A DNA stretch of 64,000 nt from Podarcis filfolensis. Its lineage: Eukaryota. A program made the position numbers and the translations under genes. Under the pieces are notes generated by a model that was given only the letters and a program-made list of their open reading frames with translations, was not told the origin of the DNA and made no database searches. The stretch is from NCBI GenBank assembly GCA_964270895.1, contig OZ185453.1; one strand, given 5' to 3'. Below are positions 7,266 through 62,167 of the stretch, piece by piece. Every line of letters begins with the position of its first letter. Position 1 is the stretch's first letter.

Positions 7266-7589
7266 GGAGTGTCTCCACCCCCATCGTTCAACCTGGACAC
7301 TGAGGTCCAGCTCCGAGGGCCTTCTGGCGGTTCCCTCATTGCGAGAAGCGAAGTTACAGGGAACCAGGCAGAGGGCCTTCTTGGTAGTGGCGCCCGCCCT
7401 GTGGAACGCCCTCCCATCAGATGTCAAGGACATAAAATAACTATATGGCGTTTAGAAGACATCTGAAGGCAGCCCTGTTTAGGGAAGTTTTTAATGACTG
7501 ATGTTTTAATGTACTTTTAATCTTTTGTTGGAAGCTGCCCAGAGTGGCTGGGGAAACCCAGCCAGATGAGCGGGGTATAAATATTATTA

Positions 7590-11567: not shown

Positions 11568-11753
11568 CTGTGTAGGCATATCAATTTGGGGAGGAATTTA
11601 TGGTTTCTCATTGCATTCCTTGTGAAAAAAACGCCATTATGCAAAGAATAAAGTTTGAGAAATGCAGTGGGAAAATCTATTTCTCTTTCTCTCTCTATAT
11701 ATATACTTAAAGTGTTTGCATATCTCTTTTTTTTTTTGTATTGTTATTTACAG

Positions 11754-11862
11754 GTGGGCTCACGTCATGTGTGCAATTGCTATTCCCGAAGTGAGATTTG
11801 TGAATGTCATAGAGAGGACACCAATAGACACAAGCAGGATACCTTTGCAGAGGTTAAAACTG
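11754..11862 (+). CDS. KDM4C: KDM4C internal coding exon (109 nt), (K)[36 protein letters not shown]
   Basis: Long polypyrimidine tract with acAG acceptor, and donor GTGAG at 11863. The phase fits the previous exon. The peptide matches KDM4C WAHVMC...RIPLQRLKL. Confidence 0.96.
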
Positions 11863-12072: not shown

Positions 12073-12203
12073 TAGCTGTGGGGAACCTTGAGCCCTCTAG
12101 GAGCTGCTGAACTACAACTCCCATCATTCCCAGCAAGCACGGCCAGGGATGATTGGGGTTTTAGGGTAGTAACATCTGGAGGGCCTTAGGTTCCCCACAC
12201 CTG
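12073..12203. mobile_element. Palindromic hAT-type MITE (actacaactcccatcatt family), degenerate
   Basis: TIR-like ends gctgtggggaaccttgagccctc / gagggccttaggttccccacacctg. The core is shared with 21208, 34121 and 48045. No clear TSD. Confidence 0.65.
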
Positions 12204-20096: not shown

Positions 20097-20403
20097 GGTA
20101 CCTCTGAGGTTCTCCTTGTGCATCCATGGAGCTTTCCTGCTCCTGGTGGGAAGGAAACTGGGAAGGCCACTTTGCAGAAGCCTAAGGCATATTAGTCACC
20201 TCACCTTCAAAGGGCCTCAAACCTTTCTCCCATTGAAGTCAATGGGGAGGATTTTGTTTAAAAGGGAAGGAAAAAGAGAGAGAAAGCTACTTCACTTTCC
20301 ACCCCTGCTATAGCTATCTGACAGAGCTTTGGATGTAGGTTTTGCTCTGCTGTACAGTCTCACAGGCTTGCTCTCTGATGAAGCCAAGCAACCGTAGAAA
20401 TTA

Positions 20404-20977
20404 CCGTATTTTTTGCCCTATAGTACACACTTTTCCCCCTCCAAAAATGAAGGGGAAATGTGTGTGTGTCCTATGGGGCGAATGCAGGCTTTCGCTGAAG
20501 CCTGGAGAGCAAGAGGGGTCGGTGCGCACCGACCCCTCTTGCTCTCCAGGCTTCAGGAAGCCATCCGCAAGCCATGGGAGAGCTGCGCGACTTGTGGAGA
20601 GCTGCCTGCACCCCGAAGCCTGGGGGCGCGCTGAGCTCAGCGCCCCCAGGCTTTGGGCTTCGCGCAGCTCTCCGCAAGCCGTGGGAGGGCTGTGCGAAGT
20701 CGCGCAGCTCTCCCACGGCTTGTGAAGAGCTGCCTGCACCCCGAAGCCTGGGAGCACACTGAGCTCAGCGCCCCCCAGGCTTCGGGCAGCTCTCTGCAAG
20801 CCTTGGGAGGGCTGCGCGAAGTTGTGCAGCTCTTCCACGGCTTGTGAAGAGCTGCCTGCATGGCTTGCGGAGGGCTGCCTGTCCTGGGGGCTGGGGTTGG
20901 GGGAAGCTTGGGCTTTTTATTTCCTCTTTATTTCCCCCCCAAAAAACTAGGTGCGCCCTATGGGCCGAAAAATACGG
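20404..20977 (-). mobile_element. TA-flanked Tc1/mariner-type MITE (CCGTATTTTT TIR) with a degenerate GC-rich hairpin array
   Basis: ta|CCGTATTTTTTGCCCTATAG ... CTATGGGCCGAAAAATACGG|tg. It belongs to the same family as 52401-53355, in opposite orientation. Confidence 0.85.
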
Positions 20978-21207
20978 TGTTTTCAACCATCTTCATAGCA
21001 AAAATACTCTTGCACTCCAATCCTAGATATATCACTGTGCACTTTGAAGGTGGTTATGAGTGATTGGGAAGATGGGAAGAACTATGGGAGCTTAGGAAAG
21101 GTACTCCTTACATTTATGATTTGCTTTTTATCATAGTTAGAAAATTATTTGTCTTTTAAAGTCATAACTTCATAATTCACTCTTGCCGTTCTTACATTAC
21201 CCTAAAC

Positions 21208-21343
21208 CAGGCTTCCTCAAACTCGGCCCTCCAGATGTTTTTGGCCTACAACTCCCATGATCCCTCGCTAGCAAGACCAGTGGTCAGGGATGATGGGAAT
21301 TGTAGTCTCAAAACATCTGGAGGGCCGAGTTTGAGGAAGCCTG
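21208..21343. mobile_element. Young palindromic hAT MITE (136 bp)
   Basis: Long TIRs caggcttcctcaaactcggccctccagatgttt / aaacatctggagggccgagtttgaggaagcctg. The perfect 8-bp TSD ccctaaac lies at 21200-21207 and 21344-21351. Confidence 0.93.
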
Positions 21344-22660: not shown

Positions 22661-23637
22661 AAGAATTATATAGAATGTGTGAAATATGAAGTAGCACAGT
22701 GGCTGTCTCCATAGTTTGTTTATATTAAGTACTAGATGCATATAAATTTTACTGAATGAGTATTCAAATGCTCAAAATGTGTTTGTGTATTACATGCAAA
22801 ACAGGGAAGAGCTCTGTCCTACTGCAAAAATTACTGCAGGAAATCACTTGTGTTGTGCAGGAAATTAGAATCATTAGGCAATTACGGTAGTCCCTTCTGA
22901 CCTTTTCACATACCTGAAATACTGTAGAGTATTTACAGTTATTAAAATTGTAGCATGATGGGATGAGCCTGTCCTTGGGGTGGAAACAGTGAGCTAGAAG
23001 ATGACCAACCAGGCTTTCTAATTGGTTCCAGGTGGGTGATGATGAACTGGGCCCAAAGCATAAGATGGAGGTGAGCAGGCCTTCCTGTGAACAGCACTTC
23101 CCGTGGGAAGATGCTGAAATGAAATCGCATCCCTAGGCATCCAGCTGACCAAAAATCAAATCAACACTGTTAGGCAAAGCAGCTGTTCAAGACCTACCCC
23201 TGCTGAAGAGTCTGCATGGGGAAAACCCTGGTCAAGGTTGTCTAACAGGATACCTGAGTGAGAAGGAAGTGCAGAGCAAATCTGAAAAAGATTGTGAACT
23301 TATTGCTGTACCCTGGGGACAGCAAGACTCTACAAAAAGCCTATTAAAATATAGGACATAAACTGCATTTTAAATTAATATGGGGAGTTGAGACAGCTTG
23401 GGTGAGTTCATAATTCCTTGAGCTGGATAAACAGATTATGTTCTATAGATGAGGGCTTTTTTTGGAAATAATGTGGAATGTCAAAGTATTTTTGTCCCAT
23501 TGGTAAAATATATTTGTGATATGCATCTTTTTCATTAGCAAATAAATAGCAAGGCTGTTTTTGGACAACTATGATTGTTCTGATAGCTAGAGCTCATGAC
23601 AAAGCTTGACTTCCAGTTGGCCAAAGGTTTTTAAATC

Positions 23638-23640
<3 letters not shown>

Positions 23641-23676
<36 letters not shown>
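23641..23676. repeat. (CT)n microsatellite
   Basis: Direct dinucleotide run adjacent to an old SINE tail. Confidence 0.95.
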
Positions 23677-23681
<5 letters not shown>

Positions 23682-23895
23682 ATTACATTTATATCCCACC
23701 TTTCCATAAGGCGCTCAAAGGTGGTGTACATGGTTCTTAATGTCCCTGGTTTATCATCACAACAGCTGCATGACGTAGGTTAGGCTGAGAGATAGTGATT
23801 GGTGCAAGTTCACTCAGTGAGTTTCATGGCTGAGTAGAGACTAGAACCCTGGTCTCCTGGGTCTCAGTCCAAGACTCTTAGACCACTCTGGCTCT
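23677..23895 (-). mobile_element. Old tRNA-derived SINE (MIR/Squam3-like), degenerate
   Basis: ttatttattacatttatatcccacctt...cacaacagc...gtaggttaggctgagagatagtga...gaaccctggtctcc pattern typical of CORE-like sauropsid SINEs. Confidence 0.6.
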
Positions 23896-31902: not shown

Positions 31903-32759
31903 ACATATGTTTGCCTCATAATACTTTGAACAACTCTGGAAGTAGGAAGAAACTTTGGAGGAGAGAGTTTTGTTTTTCTGGTAAAGAGATTGCCCAGGCA
32001 ACATAGTGAGTTTAGGAAAGAAGACTATGGATAATCACAATTGCATTTTTAAAACCTTCACTTATCCACATTAATGCCTTAGAAAACAATAGGTGCCATA
32101 TTTAATTCTTAAAAGCCTCTTGCACAGTAGGGTCATATTTTTAATAATAATTCGTTTGAAAGAGGCTATTTCAATTTGTTTATATAAGTTCACTGTAATC
32201 ATTACGTAAATTAGCAGCATTGCTTTGGTTTGCAAATTCTGGCATCCTTTTGCTACCGCTTGAAAGATCACCTGTCTGTCAGGAGCTCGTCTTACACTTG
32301 AGTAGGACCCTGGCAGAGACACATGCCCGACTGGCATGTTCTCTCCCTCCTGGTTGATCGTTTGGGAGCTTCAAAAGCTTTCTTCAACCCGAACATTACA
32401 CCGACCAATGCCAACAGACATCAGCACACTTAGGGATCCGCAGAGTCTTTGCAGCTTGCGTAATAGTCCTCAGCAACTCAGCATTTTGGCTAATCTGCTT
32501 TATTTACATATAAACACACATGGAGCATTGCAATATGGCTCTGTCTCTCTCTAGCATCAGATAGCAAAGAGAGAGAACAAAGGACAATAGTCCCACTTCA
32601 CAGAACACAGTAACACAAGCATCCTGTCTCCGTCACTTCCCACCTTGTGGAGTCAAAACATACACTGTCATGTGATAGACAAAAATCTCATGACTGCAAT
32701 CATGGAGCAGAAATTCTAACACTGTCAACCTGTTCCTGTGAGTTCAGAATACATTTATG

Positions 32760-33433
32760 CTACCATCCAACGGGCAGTGAAAGCCTCATCGTGGCCATGC
32801 TTAGTGCAGTATGAAGCCTGCATATCACAAAGGAGGTCTTCTATTCTTAACCAATCGCATTGAGGAGCCAATTGGAGTGGGCGAAATCATGGTCTTTAGG
32901 ATTGAAAGAAGGGGAATCCCAAGAGCGCATTGGGTTTTGAAAATTCATGAAAAACAAAACGGAGACATCAAGTTCTTGACAAAGGGTGACAATAACGCTG
33001 TTGATGACCAAGGCTCGTACATGCAAGGTCAGCACTGGCCGGAGAAGAAAGATGTAGTAGGACGAGCAAGAGGATTTGTGCCATGCATTGGAATAGTGAC
33101 CATCTTTAAATTTAAGTACATTGTCCTCTTTTTATTGGACTTGTTTGTTCTAGTGCATCATCAAGAGTAGCCTGCAACCCAGGGAGGCCAGCTGGAGATG
33201 CCTTTTGGTCTGAGTAGACAGTGGCGTGTGAAGTATGCACATTTCACCGCTTCTTAACCAAGTTTGGCTTTTGGCTTTTGTTTTTCTACAGCCACGTAAC
33301 AGGAGAGTTGAGTCCAGTATTTTGAACATTTTGTCACATTATAGTATTTTTGTACACCAGTGAATTTTCATATTAAAAGTTTTAAGCAAAAAAGAAAAGA
33401 AAAGAAAAGAAAAGAAAAGAAAAGAAGAGAAAT
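32760..33433 (+). pseudogene. SEC11A: 5'-truncated processed pseudogene of SEC11A (signal peptidase catalytic subunit SPC18)
   Basis: Intronless homology over 32773-33170: [25 protein letters not shown]...GEI.VFRIE...[21 protein letters not shown]...[25 protein letters not shown]. There is a 1-nt frameshift near 32806 and an in-frame loss of the MNDYP segment. A 3' UTR follows, with ATTAAA at 33372-33377 and an A-rich (AAAAG)n tail at 33388-33432. The 13-bp TSD gaatacatttatg lies at 32747-32759 and 33434-33446. The residues fit SEC11A better than SEC11C. Confidence 0.93.
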
Positions 33434-33543
33434 GAATACATTTATGTTGAAATACTCTGGTGGGAGGAAGTGGCTACTTACACACCTAACCTGGTTACTA
33501 GGAAGCAGTTATACTGGACGAGAGCATGAGCCACTGCCTTGTG

Positions 33544-33726
33544 GGTGCTGATTTGAGTAAACCAATGGATAAAAGGATACGCAAAGGAACACAACCAACA
33601 TGTCATGACTTCAGTCATGTAACAACCACAGCAGAAAGTGTTTCTCTACTCATGGGCCTCTCTGCAGGTCAGGTGCAACTTGTAGATCCTATTAAAAAAG
33701 AAAATAGCAAATTATTTAATAAAGAA
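33544..33726 (+). pseudogene. WDR20: Isolated copy of a WDR20 internal exon (183 nt, 61 codons, no stops) followed by a GTGAG donor
   Basis: Translation GADLSKPMDKRIRKGTQPTCHDFSHVTTTAESVSLLMGLSAGQVQLVDPIKKENSKLFNKE against recalled WDR20 AADLSKPIDKRIYKGTQPTCHDFNHLTATAESVSLLVGFSAGQVQLIDPIKKETSKLFNEE, about 50/61 identical. It is closer to WDR20 than to the paralog DMWD. Neighbouring WDR20 exons are absent on both sides. Confidence 0.85.
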
Positions 33727-33954
33727 GTGAGGACTTATTCCAACAGACTTTGGGAACTGACTGCTTTTAATGAAAGGGCCGGTGCTGTGCTCTTTTTATT
33801 GTAATTTTGTGTAGCTTTTTACTGGATCTTAAAAGTTTTTAATTCTATTGATGTTTAACCGTTTTTTAATGATTTAAAAAATGTTTTTAGCTTTTCTTAT
33901 TTAATTTGTAAGCTGCATTGAGCCCCTCTCAGGGAAAAAGGCAGGATATAAATG

Positions 33955-34092
33955 CAGTGATGTTTTTCTAGAAAAAGAAGTGCTGTAACTCATCATGAAC
34001 GCATCCCTTGTTCGTTCTCTTATAATGCTATGGCACCCACCTAAGAGGTGCTGTAACTGAGTTTTGGAGAGTTTCAGCTAAAAAAAGCCCTG
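33955..34092. mobile_element. hAT-type MITE, degenerate
   Basis: Ends cagtgatgtttttctag / ctaaaaaaagccctg, an internal repeated gtgctgtaact motif, and flanks tataaatg / gataaata. Confidence 0.55.
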
Positions 34093-34120
34093 GATAAATA
34101 TATGATGACTGTGATTAAGG

Positions 34121-34258
34121 CAGGGATGGGGAACCTGCAACCCTCCATATGTAGTTAGACTACAACTCTCATCATTCCTGATCATTGGCTATGCTTGCTG
34201 GGGCTGATGGGAATTGGAGTCCTACAACACCTGGTGGGCTACAGGTTCTCTATTCCTG
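34121..34258. mobile_element. Palindromic hAT MITE (actacaactc family)
   Basis: Ends cagggatggggaacctg / caggttctctattcctg, with degenerate 8-bp TSD gattaagg / ggctaagg. Confidence 0.75.
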
Positions 34259-36688: not shown

Positions 36689-36874
36689 AAATGTATCTTC
36701 TGCAGACAAAGAATTAAGAAAATATCTGGCGCCTGCATCCAGTGTTCCTACGGTCGTTGCCCAGCTTCTTTCCATGTTACATGTGCTCATGCCGCAGGAG
36801 TGCTGATGGAACCAGATGACTGGCCTTATGTTGTCTATATCACATGTTTCAGGCACAAAATCAGTCAAAATGTG
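36689..36874 (+). CDS. KDM4C: KDM4C internal coding exon (186 nt), [62 protein letters not shown] (second PHD finger)
   Basis: Acceptor ctccttttgtgcctacAG and donor GTAAGG, 62 codons, phase 0-0. Cys/His spacing fits a PHD finger. [36 protein letters not shown] is the KDM4C form rather than KDM4A or KDM4B. Confidence 0.97.
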
Positions 36875-51497: not shown

Positions 51498-52400
51498 CAG
51501 ATATATAGAGATAGAGCACAATAGTTGGAAAGTGGGGGAAGGCGGTTGGGGGGGGGGAAGCCTCTGAGTTTCATTGTGGGAGGAGTACTTTTTGTTGTGC
51601 TTTTATCAAAGAAGACAAAGCTTTGGGGGTGGGCAATGAAGAGGGCTGGTGAATCTGTTTGGGGTCCCACAGTAGATTGGAAAACAAGGCTCCATCTTAG
51701 ATCCCTGCAGAATTCTGACAATTACACATTTCAGAAACCAGGCTCTTTCACTCAAACAGTTTGAACTAGCACATACAGTCATGCATGTACAGTTCTCCCA
51801 AGCTAAATATGGTCAAAGAGGCTTTTGAGATGCTTGCAACCAATTTTCAGAGTTCTTCTTTCCATTAGTTTTAATAGCTTGAGTAGATAAATTTTATTAG
51901 TTGCTTTCATCTCTGTCATCATATATATTTCTATGATAAGCTTGTCTATTGCTGAGCTGTTAATACTAATTACAGTGGTCATGTTCTTTATGAAAACTAT
52001 CACTTTGTAAGCACAATTGTGAAAGCTTAATCACTCACACCCAAATTTCAAGCTAATGCACACAGAAATGGCTTAAGCAGAATGGACAGCTTGCATTTAG
52101 TGTATTAACTGAATGGGCTTGTTGACATTTCAGTTCAGTCCTGAGGGATACGCTTCCCATCTCAGGGAACCCCAATTCAGTCACCTTTACAACTTTGCTA
52201 CAGGAACCCTTCTTTTCCCCCTAGATTTTAAACAGTGTGCGCTCACTCTTTGTGACAGTTCCCGTACTCCTTCTCTTGCAATCTTTTTAAATATATATTG
52301 CCACTCTAAACCCTTGCTGAAACAATCATTAAATTTTCTATTACTACAGTGAATAGCCCATTATAAAGTTGGTAGGAGCTTTGATTTCTTCATGCACCTA

Positions 52401-53355
52401 CCGTATTTTTCGCACCATAGGGCGCACCGGACCATAGGGCGCACCCAGTTTTTTTTGGGGAAAATAAAGGGGAAAAATTATTTTTCCCCCAGGCGCGGGG
52501 CTGGGGCGGGGGAAGCTCGAGCTTCCCCCGACCCCAGCCCCCAAACAGGCAGCTCTCTGCAAGCCGTGGGAGCGCTCCCACTGCTTGCGGAGAGGTCCGC
52601 GAAGCCTGAGCGCGCTGATCTCAGCACGCGCAGGCTTCGGCATGCTGGCAACTCTCCGCAAGCAGCGGGAGCGCTCCCGCTGTTTGCGGAGAGGTCCGCG
52701 AAACCTGGGCGCGCTGATCTCAGCGCGCGCAGGCTTAGGCATGCTGGCAACTCTCCGCAAGCAGCGGGAGCGCTCCCGCTGTTTGCGGAGAGGTCCGCGA
52801 AGCCTGGGCGCGCTGATCTCAGCGCGCGCAGGCTTCGGCATGCTGGCAAGTCTCCGCAAGCAGCGGGAGCGCTCCCGCTGTTTGCGGAGAGGTCCGCGAA
52901 GCCTGGGCGCGCTGATCTCAGCGCGCGCAGGCTTCGGCATGCTGGCAAGTCTCCGCAAGCAGCGGGAGCGCTCCCGCTGTTTGCGGAGAGGTCCGCGAAG
53001 CCTGGGCGCGCTGATCTCAGCGCGCGCAGGCTTCGGCATGCTGGCAACTCTCCGCAAGCAGCGGGAGCGCTCCCGCTGTTTGCGGAGAGGTCCGCGAAGC
53101 CTGGACGCGCTGAGTTCAGCGCGCGCAGGCTTCGGCATGCAGGCAAGTCTCCGCAAGCAGCGGGAGCCCAGCGCTGGGCTCCCACTGCTTGCAGAGAGGT
53201 GTGCGAAGCCTGGAGAGCGTGAGGGGTCGGTGCGCACCGACCTCTCTCACTCTCCAGGCTTCAGCGAAAGCCTGCATTCGCACCATAGGACGCACACACA
53301 TTTCCCCTTCATTTTTGGAGGGGAAAAAGTGCGTCCTATGGTGCGAAAAATACGG
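52401..53355 (+). mobile_element. TA-flanked Tc1/mariner-type MITE (CCGTATTTTTCGCACCATAGG TIR) containing a 99-bp tandem array
   Basis: ta|CCGTATTTTTCGCACCATAGG ... CCTATGGTGCGAAAAATACGG|ta, a perfect 21-bp TIR. Confidence 0.92.
52559..53211. repeat. 99-bp GC-rich minisatellite, 6 full units plus a partial unit
   Basis: Units start at 52559, 52658, 52757, 52856, 52955, 53054 and 53153 and are nearly identical. Confidence 0.95.
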
Positions 53356-55368
53356 TACTTTTTTTTAATCAAAAGGTAGAAAAAGTGGTACATCTTAGAA
53401 ACATTCAACCAAAGACAATTGGAGAGCCTGGTGTACATTAAAATAAAGCAGCTATGCATATTGGGCCGGCAGCTTGCATGTTATGCCTAGAAAGATTCGT
53501 TGCCACTGCTGTTGTTGCCAGACCACAGATGAGCAGAGCAGATCAGACATTCAAGAGAGCAGGAGTTCTTCTCTGGATGGGATTAAAATCCAAACCAGAG
53601 GTGGGTCATATTGAAGGCGGGGCGGTATTGCCTTCACCCAGTTGCCAGTTAGGAGATTCATATAATGATGATAAATAATAAAAGCATAAATATAATGTTG
53701 AATAGATAACTATCATGCTTACGTGATTTAATAATGTAATTAGCCATCCAGTTACTTTTGCTGGTAAGAGAGACTGATTATAAAGGCCATGACATTATTA
53801 GAATGGAAATATTGTCGTCAGTGGACACTCTAAATTGCAGCTAACACTCCAAAATCTTTCTAGAGGCAAAACTCACCAGCTCTACATTCTTTTCACTGAT
53901 CTGCATTTCCTCTCTATGTTCATACAACCCACACTCATTTAGGACCGTTCTTTATAGGGGAATCCCTAGGCTGCAGCCTGAATCTGCTTAGACTTGTTTT
54001 TAACCATCCTTGGTGTATATCTGTTATGAGGTTCCTTTGGCCCACTTCATGTATCTTCTCAACTCTGGAGAGTGTTAATACCAGTTTCTAACATAATTTC
54101 CCTTACAGAGCCATTATCCCACGTTAAGATTTTTTTCTTTGCCCTGTAAATATGTTTAAACAGCACTTCTAGAAAAGACTTTGTATCCAACGTTTGGTAA
54201 ACCACTAAGGCAGGGTTGAGGAACCCGTGGCCCTTCAGAAGTCGCTTCTATCATCCCTGAGCATGGAGCCCTGTTGCCTGGGGTTGATGAGAGCTGAAGT
54301 CCAACAATAAATGGCGGGACACAGGCTTCCCACCCCTCCACCATTGGAAGGAAAATCTACAACTGGGGAAGCCACTGAGAAGCCTTCTTAGTATCTCTAG
54401 CTGTGAAACTGGCACACTGGTAATCAAGAAAATTCTCCAGGTTGAACTTAAAGACCAATGTAGCATATTAAGGAGAAGGTATTCTGTGTTCCTTTACTAT
54501 CTGGGGCTTAATAAGTAAAAAAAACCCAACACCTATTCTTGTGCCCTGAATATCATAAGAAACCCGTGGAGACTCTGGCAAAATTGGTGTAATCCCCCCC
54601 CCCTTCATTTCTTGGTTTGTCAGGTGTGTTTTGCAGCCAAGGAAGTTTCCAGGAAGTCTTTATCAATAAGACTTCAACATAGAATGCATGAGCCATTTTG
54701 CTTTGAATAATGGAGAAATGGCTGGTGGTTATTAGGCACCGTCAAACAGAGCAGATGGCAGTCTTCTTGCAAAATGAAAATAAGCATCACTTCCTCAACC
54801 TGGGCATCCAAACATGAGAGACCAGGGAAAGCTGCTGTGTGCATTCCTATCCTTGCATTTTCAGCCACAGGGTCTTACTACATCGCTACCTTAGTTGTTT
54901 TTTTTATGCACCCTCTGTTGCATCATCTGTACCAATTTCCTCACCCTGGCCAAACACTGGGTCACTACCAATAGCAAGTTCTGCATGGCCCTGCAGTGAA
55001 AAAGCAGTTCTGAGATCACTTGTTTCTGCAGCAGGATTCTGGCAGCTGGAGGGAACATCAGAGGAAGTCTACAGCCATGGGGTGCATCATGCCGTGCCAA
55101 ATTAAACACTCGGCCTGAAATCCACACCTCATTTACTGGGAAGATATCCTGTTCATGTTGAAAGGACGGGATACAGGGTTGTGAACTGAAACATAATGCA
55201 AAATGTTTGTCTAGTGCCTCAAATGATATATTTTATCATATCAATGGCAGAAATGCTCATTTTCCCTCTCAGAATCAGCAGGAAAAACACTTGTTATATT
55301 ATATTTACAGCAGTAGTTACCTGAATGTATGTGTGTGTGTGTGTATACTGAGGACCGGAACCGACACC

Positions 55369-62074: not shown

Positions 62075-62167
62075 GTGGAGTTTGAAGATGGTTCTCAGAT
62101 AGCAACGAAAAGGGAAGAAATCTACACTCTGGATGAAGAACTGCCCAAAAGAGTGCGGGCTCGATTT
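62075..62167 (+). CDS. KDM4C: KDM4C internal coding exon (93 nt), [31 protein letters not shown] (end of double Tudor)
   Basis: T-rich tract with atAG acceptor and donor GTAAGT at 62168, 31 codons. It matches the KDM4 motif VEFEDGSQ...[12 protein letters not shown]. The final exon lies beyond the window. Confidence 0.97.

Follow-up and report, generated by a model that had tools for sequence, protein, structure and literature searches.

How did a single internal exon of WDR20, with an open reading frame and a donor-like sequence at its 3' end, come to lie inside an intron of another gene, and does it act as an exon there? The locus in question lies in a 64,000-nucleotide stretch of contig OZ185453.1 from Podarcis filfolensis (hereafter the window, which means the whole stretch of DNA that was analysed). 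The first-pass annotation of this DNA took the sequence for an orphan WDR20 exon in a KDM4C intron, copied from genomic DNA or unspliced pre-mRNA, and saw in it something like an exon-shuffling intermediate with a splice donor of its own. The features of the locus and its surroundings are as follows.

11734-11862, + strand: upstream host exon encoding a PHD-like zinc finger (PF13832, E = 6.6e-8), ending in phase 0
32747-32759, + strand: upstream copy (GAATACATTTATG) of the SEC11A target-site duplication, 13/13 identical to the downstream copy
32760-33433, + strand: 5'-truncated SEC11A processed pseudogene, residues 55-177 contiguous, E = 2e-55
33434-33446, + strand: downstream copy (GAATACATTTATG) of the SEC11A target-site duplication
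33447-33533, + strand: 5' flank of the WDR20 piece, either old KDM4C intron or further WDR20 intron 1
33534-33543, + strand: WDR20 intron 1, 3'-terminal remnant (CTGCCTTGTG), by blastn to Crotalus; acceptor AG lost
33544-33726, + strand: WDR20 exon 2 copy, an open 61-codon frame with 11 amino-acid changes from the tetrapod-invariant peptide
33718-33723, + strand: AATAAA, produced by a G-to-A change that turns E into K
33727-33731, + strand: GTGAG, a donor remnant, most likely the start (5 nt) of WDR20 intron 2
33734-33953, + strand: 5'-truncated non-LTR retroelement of SINE-like type, 3' part, in sense orientation, ending in AGGCAGGATATAAAT

The host exons were searched one by one, each open reading frame (ORF) taken alone. 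The next host exon starts at 36689 on the + strand, and according to the ORF coordinates the host intron is in phase 0 on both sides. An exon at 62075 encodes a Tudor domain whose best match is KDM4C (2XDP, E = 1e-10), followed by KDM4B (1.4e-9), and by this match the host appears to be a KDM4 gene of the KDM4C-like type. The sense orientation of the copy within a phase-0 KDM4C intron, as first annotated, agrees with both the ORF coordinates (11862/36689) and the Tudor match.

The identity of the copied exon is clear at the protein level. When all PDB chains were searched with phmmer, the translation of 33544-33726 matched residues 85-144 of WDR20 (50/60 identical, E = 1.2e-28), and the only protein represented among the matches was WDR20 (5K19/5K1C, 6JLQ). 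Once the first residue, a G in place of A, is added to the comparison, the identity becomes 50/61. A search of 1.84 billion representative proteins yielded 240 matches to the copy peptide, and among the matches listed all were WDR20/DMWD-type exon peptides; the copy is 83% identical to the WDR20 type vs 65% to the DM1-locus WD protein, in favour of WDR20 over its paralogue DMWD. No protein more than 83% identical to the exon copy was found in two protein searches, and thus no annotated product carries the variant peptide of the copy. A Pfam search of the 61 amino acids gave no match, which is the expected outcome for part of a WD blade, and the window's own ORFs were not found in the protein records searched.

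The limits of the exon could also be established. Dozens of genomic read-through ORFs have the form ...Q/AADLSK...LFNEE/V..., where the slash marks the border, and spliced WDR20 proteins read YKGVRK/AADLSK...LFNEE/RLIDKS. Taken together, they define AADLSK..LFNEE as one 183-nt exon in phase 0-0. When full-length snake WDR20 was compared with the window by tblastn, exon 2 alone was matched; the other WDR20 exons are absent from the 64 kb (next match, E = 0.26), and similarity to exon 1 or exon 3 was found nowhere in the window. The first-pass annotation had given these exon limits, had counted 61 stop-free codons with 50/61 identity, had assigned the segment to WDR20 and had seen no similarity continuing into the spliced neighbour exons, and on each of these points it proved correct. 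The short motifs to which it drew attention (GTGAG at 33727-33731, TG at 33542-33543, and AATAAA at 33718-33723, where Crotalus reads AATGAA) are likewise all present.

To ask what kind of molecule was copied, the parent gene was represented by two snake orthologues, those of Ahaetulla prasina (L003; exon 2 at 23513-23695, bordered by CAG and GTAAG) and Crotalus horridus (L004; exon 2 at 501-683). As these orthologues stand in for the lizard parent, the extent of the copied introns and the dN/dS of the copy's branch are to be taken as estimates. The copy is identical to each snake exon at 160/183 nucleotides (86-87%), and its GC3 is 0.23 vs 0.25-0.26 in the snake exons. Five further WDR20 loci with a tetrapod-type exon 2 peptide were found in Logan assemblies, four of them in SRR311757xx-SRR311759xx (L001, L002, L005, L006) and one in DRR511882 (L007). 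These were rejected as parent, being GC-rich (GC3 0.51-0.93), with introns of only about 100-1500 nt, and merely 122-132/183 identical to the copy.

Remnants of introns were observed on both sides of the exon. Upstream, the window sequence CTGCCTTGTGG-G aligns by blastn, with one gap, to CTTCCTTGCAGGC, the last 11 nt of Crotalus intron 1. Downstream, GTGAG aligns by blastn to GTAAG, the first 5 nt of snake intron 2, and the alignment of the adjoining repeat does not reach these five nucleotides. The presence of intron sequence on both sides indicates that the template was genomic DNA or unspliced RNA, not mature mRNA, which supports the first reading of the locus on this point. The acceptor position (33542-33543) reads TG instead of AG. 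The loss of the acceptor was probably accompanied by a 1-nt deletion in the first codon of the copy, as implied by the better of the snake alignments, in which case the copied exon would be 182 nt long and not 183. Further upstream, the 5' flank (33447-33533) has no second copy within the window, and its comparison with snake intron 1 gave nothing above shuffled controls, a comparison that is uninformative at the snake-lizard distance.

A processed pseudogene lies close by. The SEC11A copy, which ends about 100 nt upstream of the WDR20 piece, carries ATTAAA at 33372-33377 and an A-rich, (AAAAG)n-like tail at 33388-33433; it retains an open frame of 119 codons at 32811-33170, with a 5-residue gap relative to human SEC11A. 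The WDR20 piece resembles such processed pseudogenes in being gene-derived, dead, intronic and decaying at about the neutral rate. Unlike them, it consists of one exon with intron remnants, whereas the SEC11A copy has contiguous coding sequence across exon borders, an ATTAAA, an A-rich tail and a 13-nt duplication. Neighbour exons are not joined to the WDR20 exon without introns; its flanks read as an intron end on one side and GTGAG on the other, no A tail follows the fragment, and no direct repeat of its own flanks it. The annotation's statement that this is not an ordinary processed pseudogene thus agrees with a single exon that has intron remnants on both sides. The perfect 13-nt target-site duplication of the SEC11A copy identifies it as a separate, self-contained insertion of the L1 type, and a single chimeric SEC11A-WDR20 event was rejected for the same reason.

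A further candidate is a retrocopy of a WDR20 transcript that had kept an intron or had ended prematurely; longer at first, it would have been cut down by insertions and deletions to a relic of one exon. Many mammals have annotated short WDR20 isoforms that terminate directly behind exon 2, and retroposed sequences cluster in this region. However, the upstream flank reads as the end of an intron, not as exon 1, neither exon 1 nor exon 3 has left any similarity in the window, and the fragment is without a poly-A tail, so that such an origin seems doubtful.

The 3' neighbour of the exon offers another route. The SINE-like repeat begins 8 nt past the end of the exon copy and has the same orientation. 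From 33734 onward it matches window positions 13085-12984 (minus strand) with 74% identity, and its 3' box, AGGCAGGATATAAAT, occupies 33939-33953 on the + strand. The same box is common to elements at 7568, 17343, 23701, 44739 and others, many of which then continue into (ATT)n. The piece next to the exon is thus about 220 nt of the 3' part of a retroelement, and the junction between copy and repeat falls at 33731-33734, with 0-2 unassigned bases between them. In other words, a cellular piece is followed directly by what remains of a 5'-truncated retroelement, its 3' part, and both run in the same direction. An Rfam search found no family in window positions 1-36700.

We consider the locus to be a copy of WDR20 exon 2 that is dead and decays neutrally, and that most likely belongs to a chimeric retrocopy in the KDM4C intron, of which it forms the 5' half, a reading to which we assign a probability of roughly 55%. 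By this mechanism, a reverse transcriptase would have started to copy the RNA of the SINE-like retroelement from its 3' end; some 220 nt in, it would have jumped to a WDR20 pre-mRNA just past the donor of exon 2, and from there it would have copied back through exon 2 into intron 1. We infer both the template jump and this order of events from the layout of the locus. Several observations are consistent with it. Exon 2 is the sole WDR20 match in the 64 kb and is bounded by intron remnants; the repeat starts at 33734 in the orientation of the exon, in the layout of known chimeras between cellular RNA and retroelements; the SEC11A copy is bracketed by its own target-site duplication; and the exon carries 12 nonsynonymous changes. 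No terminal inverted repeats were found around the WDR20 piece, only low-complexity inverted matches, and capture by a DNA transposon of the Pack-TIR type was rejected on that ground.

Template switching is described as a source of chimeras in which L1 is joined to U6, to other small RNAs or to mRNAs, and double jumps have been described for a fungal LINE (bioRxiv 10.1101/2025.02.02.635956; PMC2104539). Such chimeras share with the present locus a cellular piece placed 5' of the 3' part of a 5'-truncated retroelement, directly joined and in the same orientation (bioRxiv 10.1101/2025.02.02.635956; PMC2104539). Splice-mediated exon/L1 chimeras, in turn, end exactly at the exon border (bioRxiv 10.1101/2025.02.02.635956), and the presence of GTGAG beyond the border of WDR20 exon 2 therefore argues against a splicing route. 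There are also differences from the known cases. The partner here is a short SINE-like lizard element and not L1, as it is in the U6/L1 and mRNA/L1 chimeras; the cellular part is unspliced, comprising an intron end, an internal exon 2 and a donor, and is neither a small RNA nor a set of first spliced exons; and a target-site duplication around the composite was looked for and not found.

This last point counts against a chimera. The search for a target-site duplication of the composite insertion (8-12-mers with at most 2 mismatches, the 5' breakpoint not being located) was negative; in the case of an old insertion, the duplication may since have been lost. Two copies of the 9-mer AAAGAAGTG, at 33721-33729 and 33974-33982, lie on either side of the repeat. 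This pair could be a target-site duplication that belongs to the repeat only, in which case the repeat would have been inserted later. The principal rival to a chimera draws in part on this possibility: the WDR20 exon 2 region would have been copied on a small scale at the DNA level, for instance as filler captured during double-strand-break repair or as what is left of a larger ectopic duplication, and the SINE-like element would afterward have been inserted independently at the exon/intron border; the copy would again be a neutral relic. A genomic source would account for the two intron remnants no less well than pre-mRNA does, and the negative search for a composite duplication also speaks for such a history. 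However, the second copy of AAAGAAGTG lies about 20 nt beyond the usual ATAAAT end of the element, and since a direct-repeat search returned 15 families within 1.4 kb, several such 9-mers are expected by chance. Past the repeat, nothing resembling snake intron 2 was found, although this is a weak test at that distance. Moreover, this history needs the coincidence that an independent element landed within 8 nt of the exon end and in the same orientation. We regard a DNA-level copy as possible, though clearly less probable than a chimeric retrocopy; the biological verdict on the locus would be the same in both cases.

That verdict depends on how the exon has changed since it was copied. Snakes, mammals and many other genomes all have the same exon 2 peptide, and all 11 replacements can thus be assigned to the branch of the copy. 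Compared with the two snake exons, which differ from each other by 2 nt, the copy shows 23 nucleotide differences, of which 7-8 are at first, 4 at second and 11-12 at third codon positions. By the method of Nei and Gojobori, Nd is 12 and Sd is 11, with dN = 0.089 and dS = 0.35; the raw dN/dS of 0.25 mixes the constrained parent lineage with the branch of the copy and is not the copy's own value. When about 16 substitutions were placed at random in the snake exon by simulation, about 11 amino-acid changes resulted. The remaining differences, about 7, would then represent synonymous divergence between the lizard and snake parents, and the pattern fits neutral decay at roughly 9% divergence. The frame stayed open in 56% of the simulated trials, so that an open frame is no sign of selection. 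Consistently, the decay and the lost acceptor proposed at first are supported by these 11 replacements and by the TG at the acceptor position, and the copy is in all likelihood without function.

Could the copy nevertheless be spliced? Like exonised or shuffled exons, it lies in sense orientation in a phase-0 host intron, has a length near a multiple of three, and is followed by a donor-like GTGAGG. Unlike them, it has no acceptor, its peptide is not conserved, and the variant peptide was not met in protein searches. The donor-like sequence after the exon copy, AAG/GTGAGG, is fair, whereas the AG of the acceptor has been replaced by TG, and no usable AG with a pyrimidine tract was found upstream of the copy. 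Splicing to the closest AG on the upstream side (33529-33530) would yield an exon of 196 nt in which a stop follows the first six codons. The AG at 33521-33522 would give an in-frame cassette of 204 nt, but it is without a pyrimidine tract. A search of sequencing runs for this stretch returned matches in DNA runs, from the source species and three relatives, and none in RNA runs; the runs of the three related species contain 33-58% of the words of the stretch.

It is therefore very improbable that the copy is a KDM4C cassette exon, or an exon-shuffling intermediate, that combines the GTGAGG donor with a cryptic upstream acceptor. Its sense orientation in an intron of phase 0 on both sides, its open frame, its fair donor and the in-frame AG speak for such a role. 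Against it stand the loss of the orthologous acceptor, the stop or the missing pyrimidine tract at the two substitute AGs, 11 replacements at positions invariant in the parent, a frame whose openness is expected by chance, the lack of any RNA run among the matches, and the lack of the variant peptide from the proteins of both searches. Here the first-pass annotation is not supported: the supposed exon-shuffling intermediate with its own donor retains just 5 nt of the donor intron before the repeat begins, its exon would be 182 nt long, an upstream acceptor is not available, and its substitutions fit neutrality. If the copied exon were spliced into KDM4C transcripts through the GTGAGG donor and the AG at 33521-33522, now or formerly, a peptide derived from a WD repeat would be placed in the PHD region of KDM4C, and one would be looking at live exon shuffling by a retroelement-borne pre-mRNA fragment; we give this hardly any credence.

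By itself, a further dead fragment of a gene in a lizard intron rich in repeats carries little weight. As a dead fragment, though, it is a fairly clean case in which an internal exon was copied with both of its intron borders and is fused to the tail of a retroelement. If the locus is indeed a chimera, the reverse transcriptase of a lizard retroelement can take up nascent, unspliced host RNA, which would provide one route for single exons to move between genes. The locus also invites caution in two respects: an open frame of 61 codons followed by a donor-like GTGAG is not evidence of function, and pieces derived from two genes may lie within 1 kb of each other and still have been inserted separately.

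Other repeats were observed in the window. SINE-like elements ending in a GGGCGGGGTATAAA-type box are present at 7568, 17343, 44739 and 56464 (+), with relatives at 934, 23701 (-) and 61616. A long (ATT)n tract often follows the box in these elements, and their upstream part forms a pseudo-ORF ending in ..LKAALFREAF. Downstream of the WDR20 copy, a dispersed repeat at 34116-34248 has copies at 12083-12203, 54206-54337 and 21226-21325; the last of these carries the repeat on both strands and is thus palindromic there. Finally, G+C-rich arrays of similar units with long ORFs on both strands (e.g., ...GRADLSARRLRHAG...) extend over 20340-20990 and 52390-53380, and the former looks like a shorter relative of the latter.
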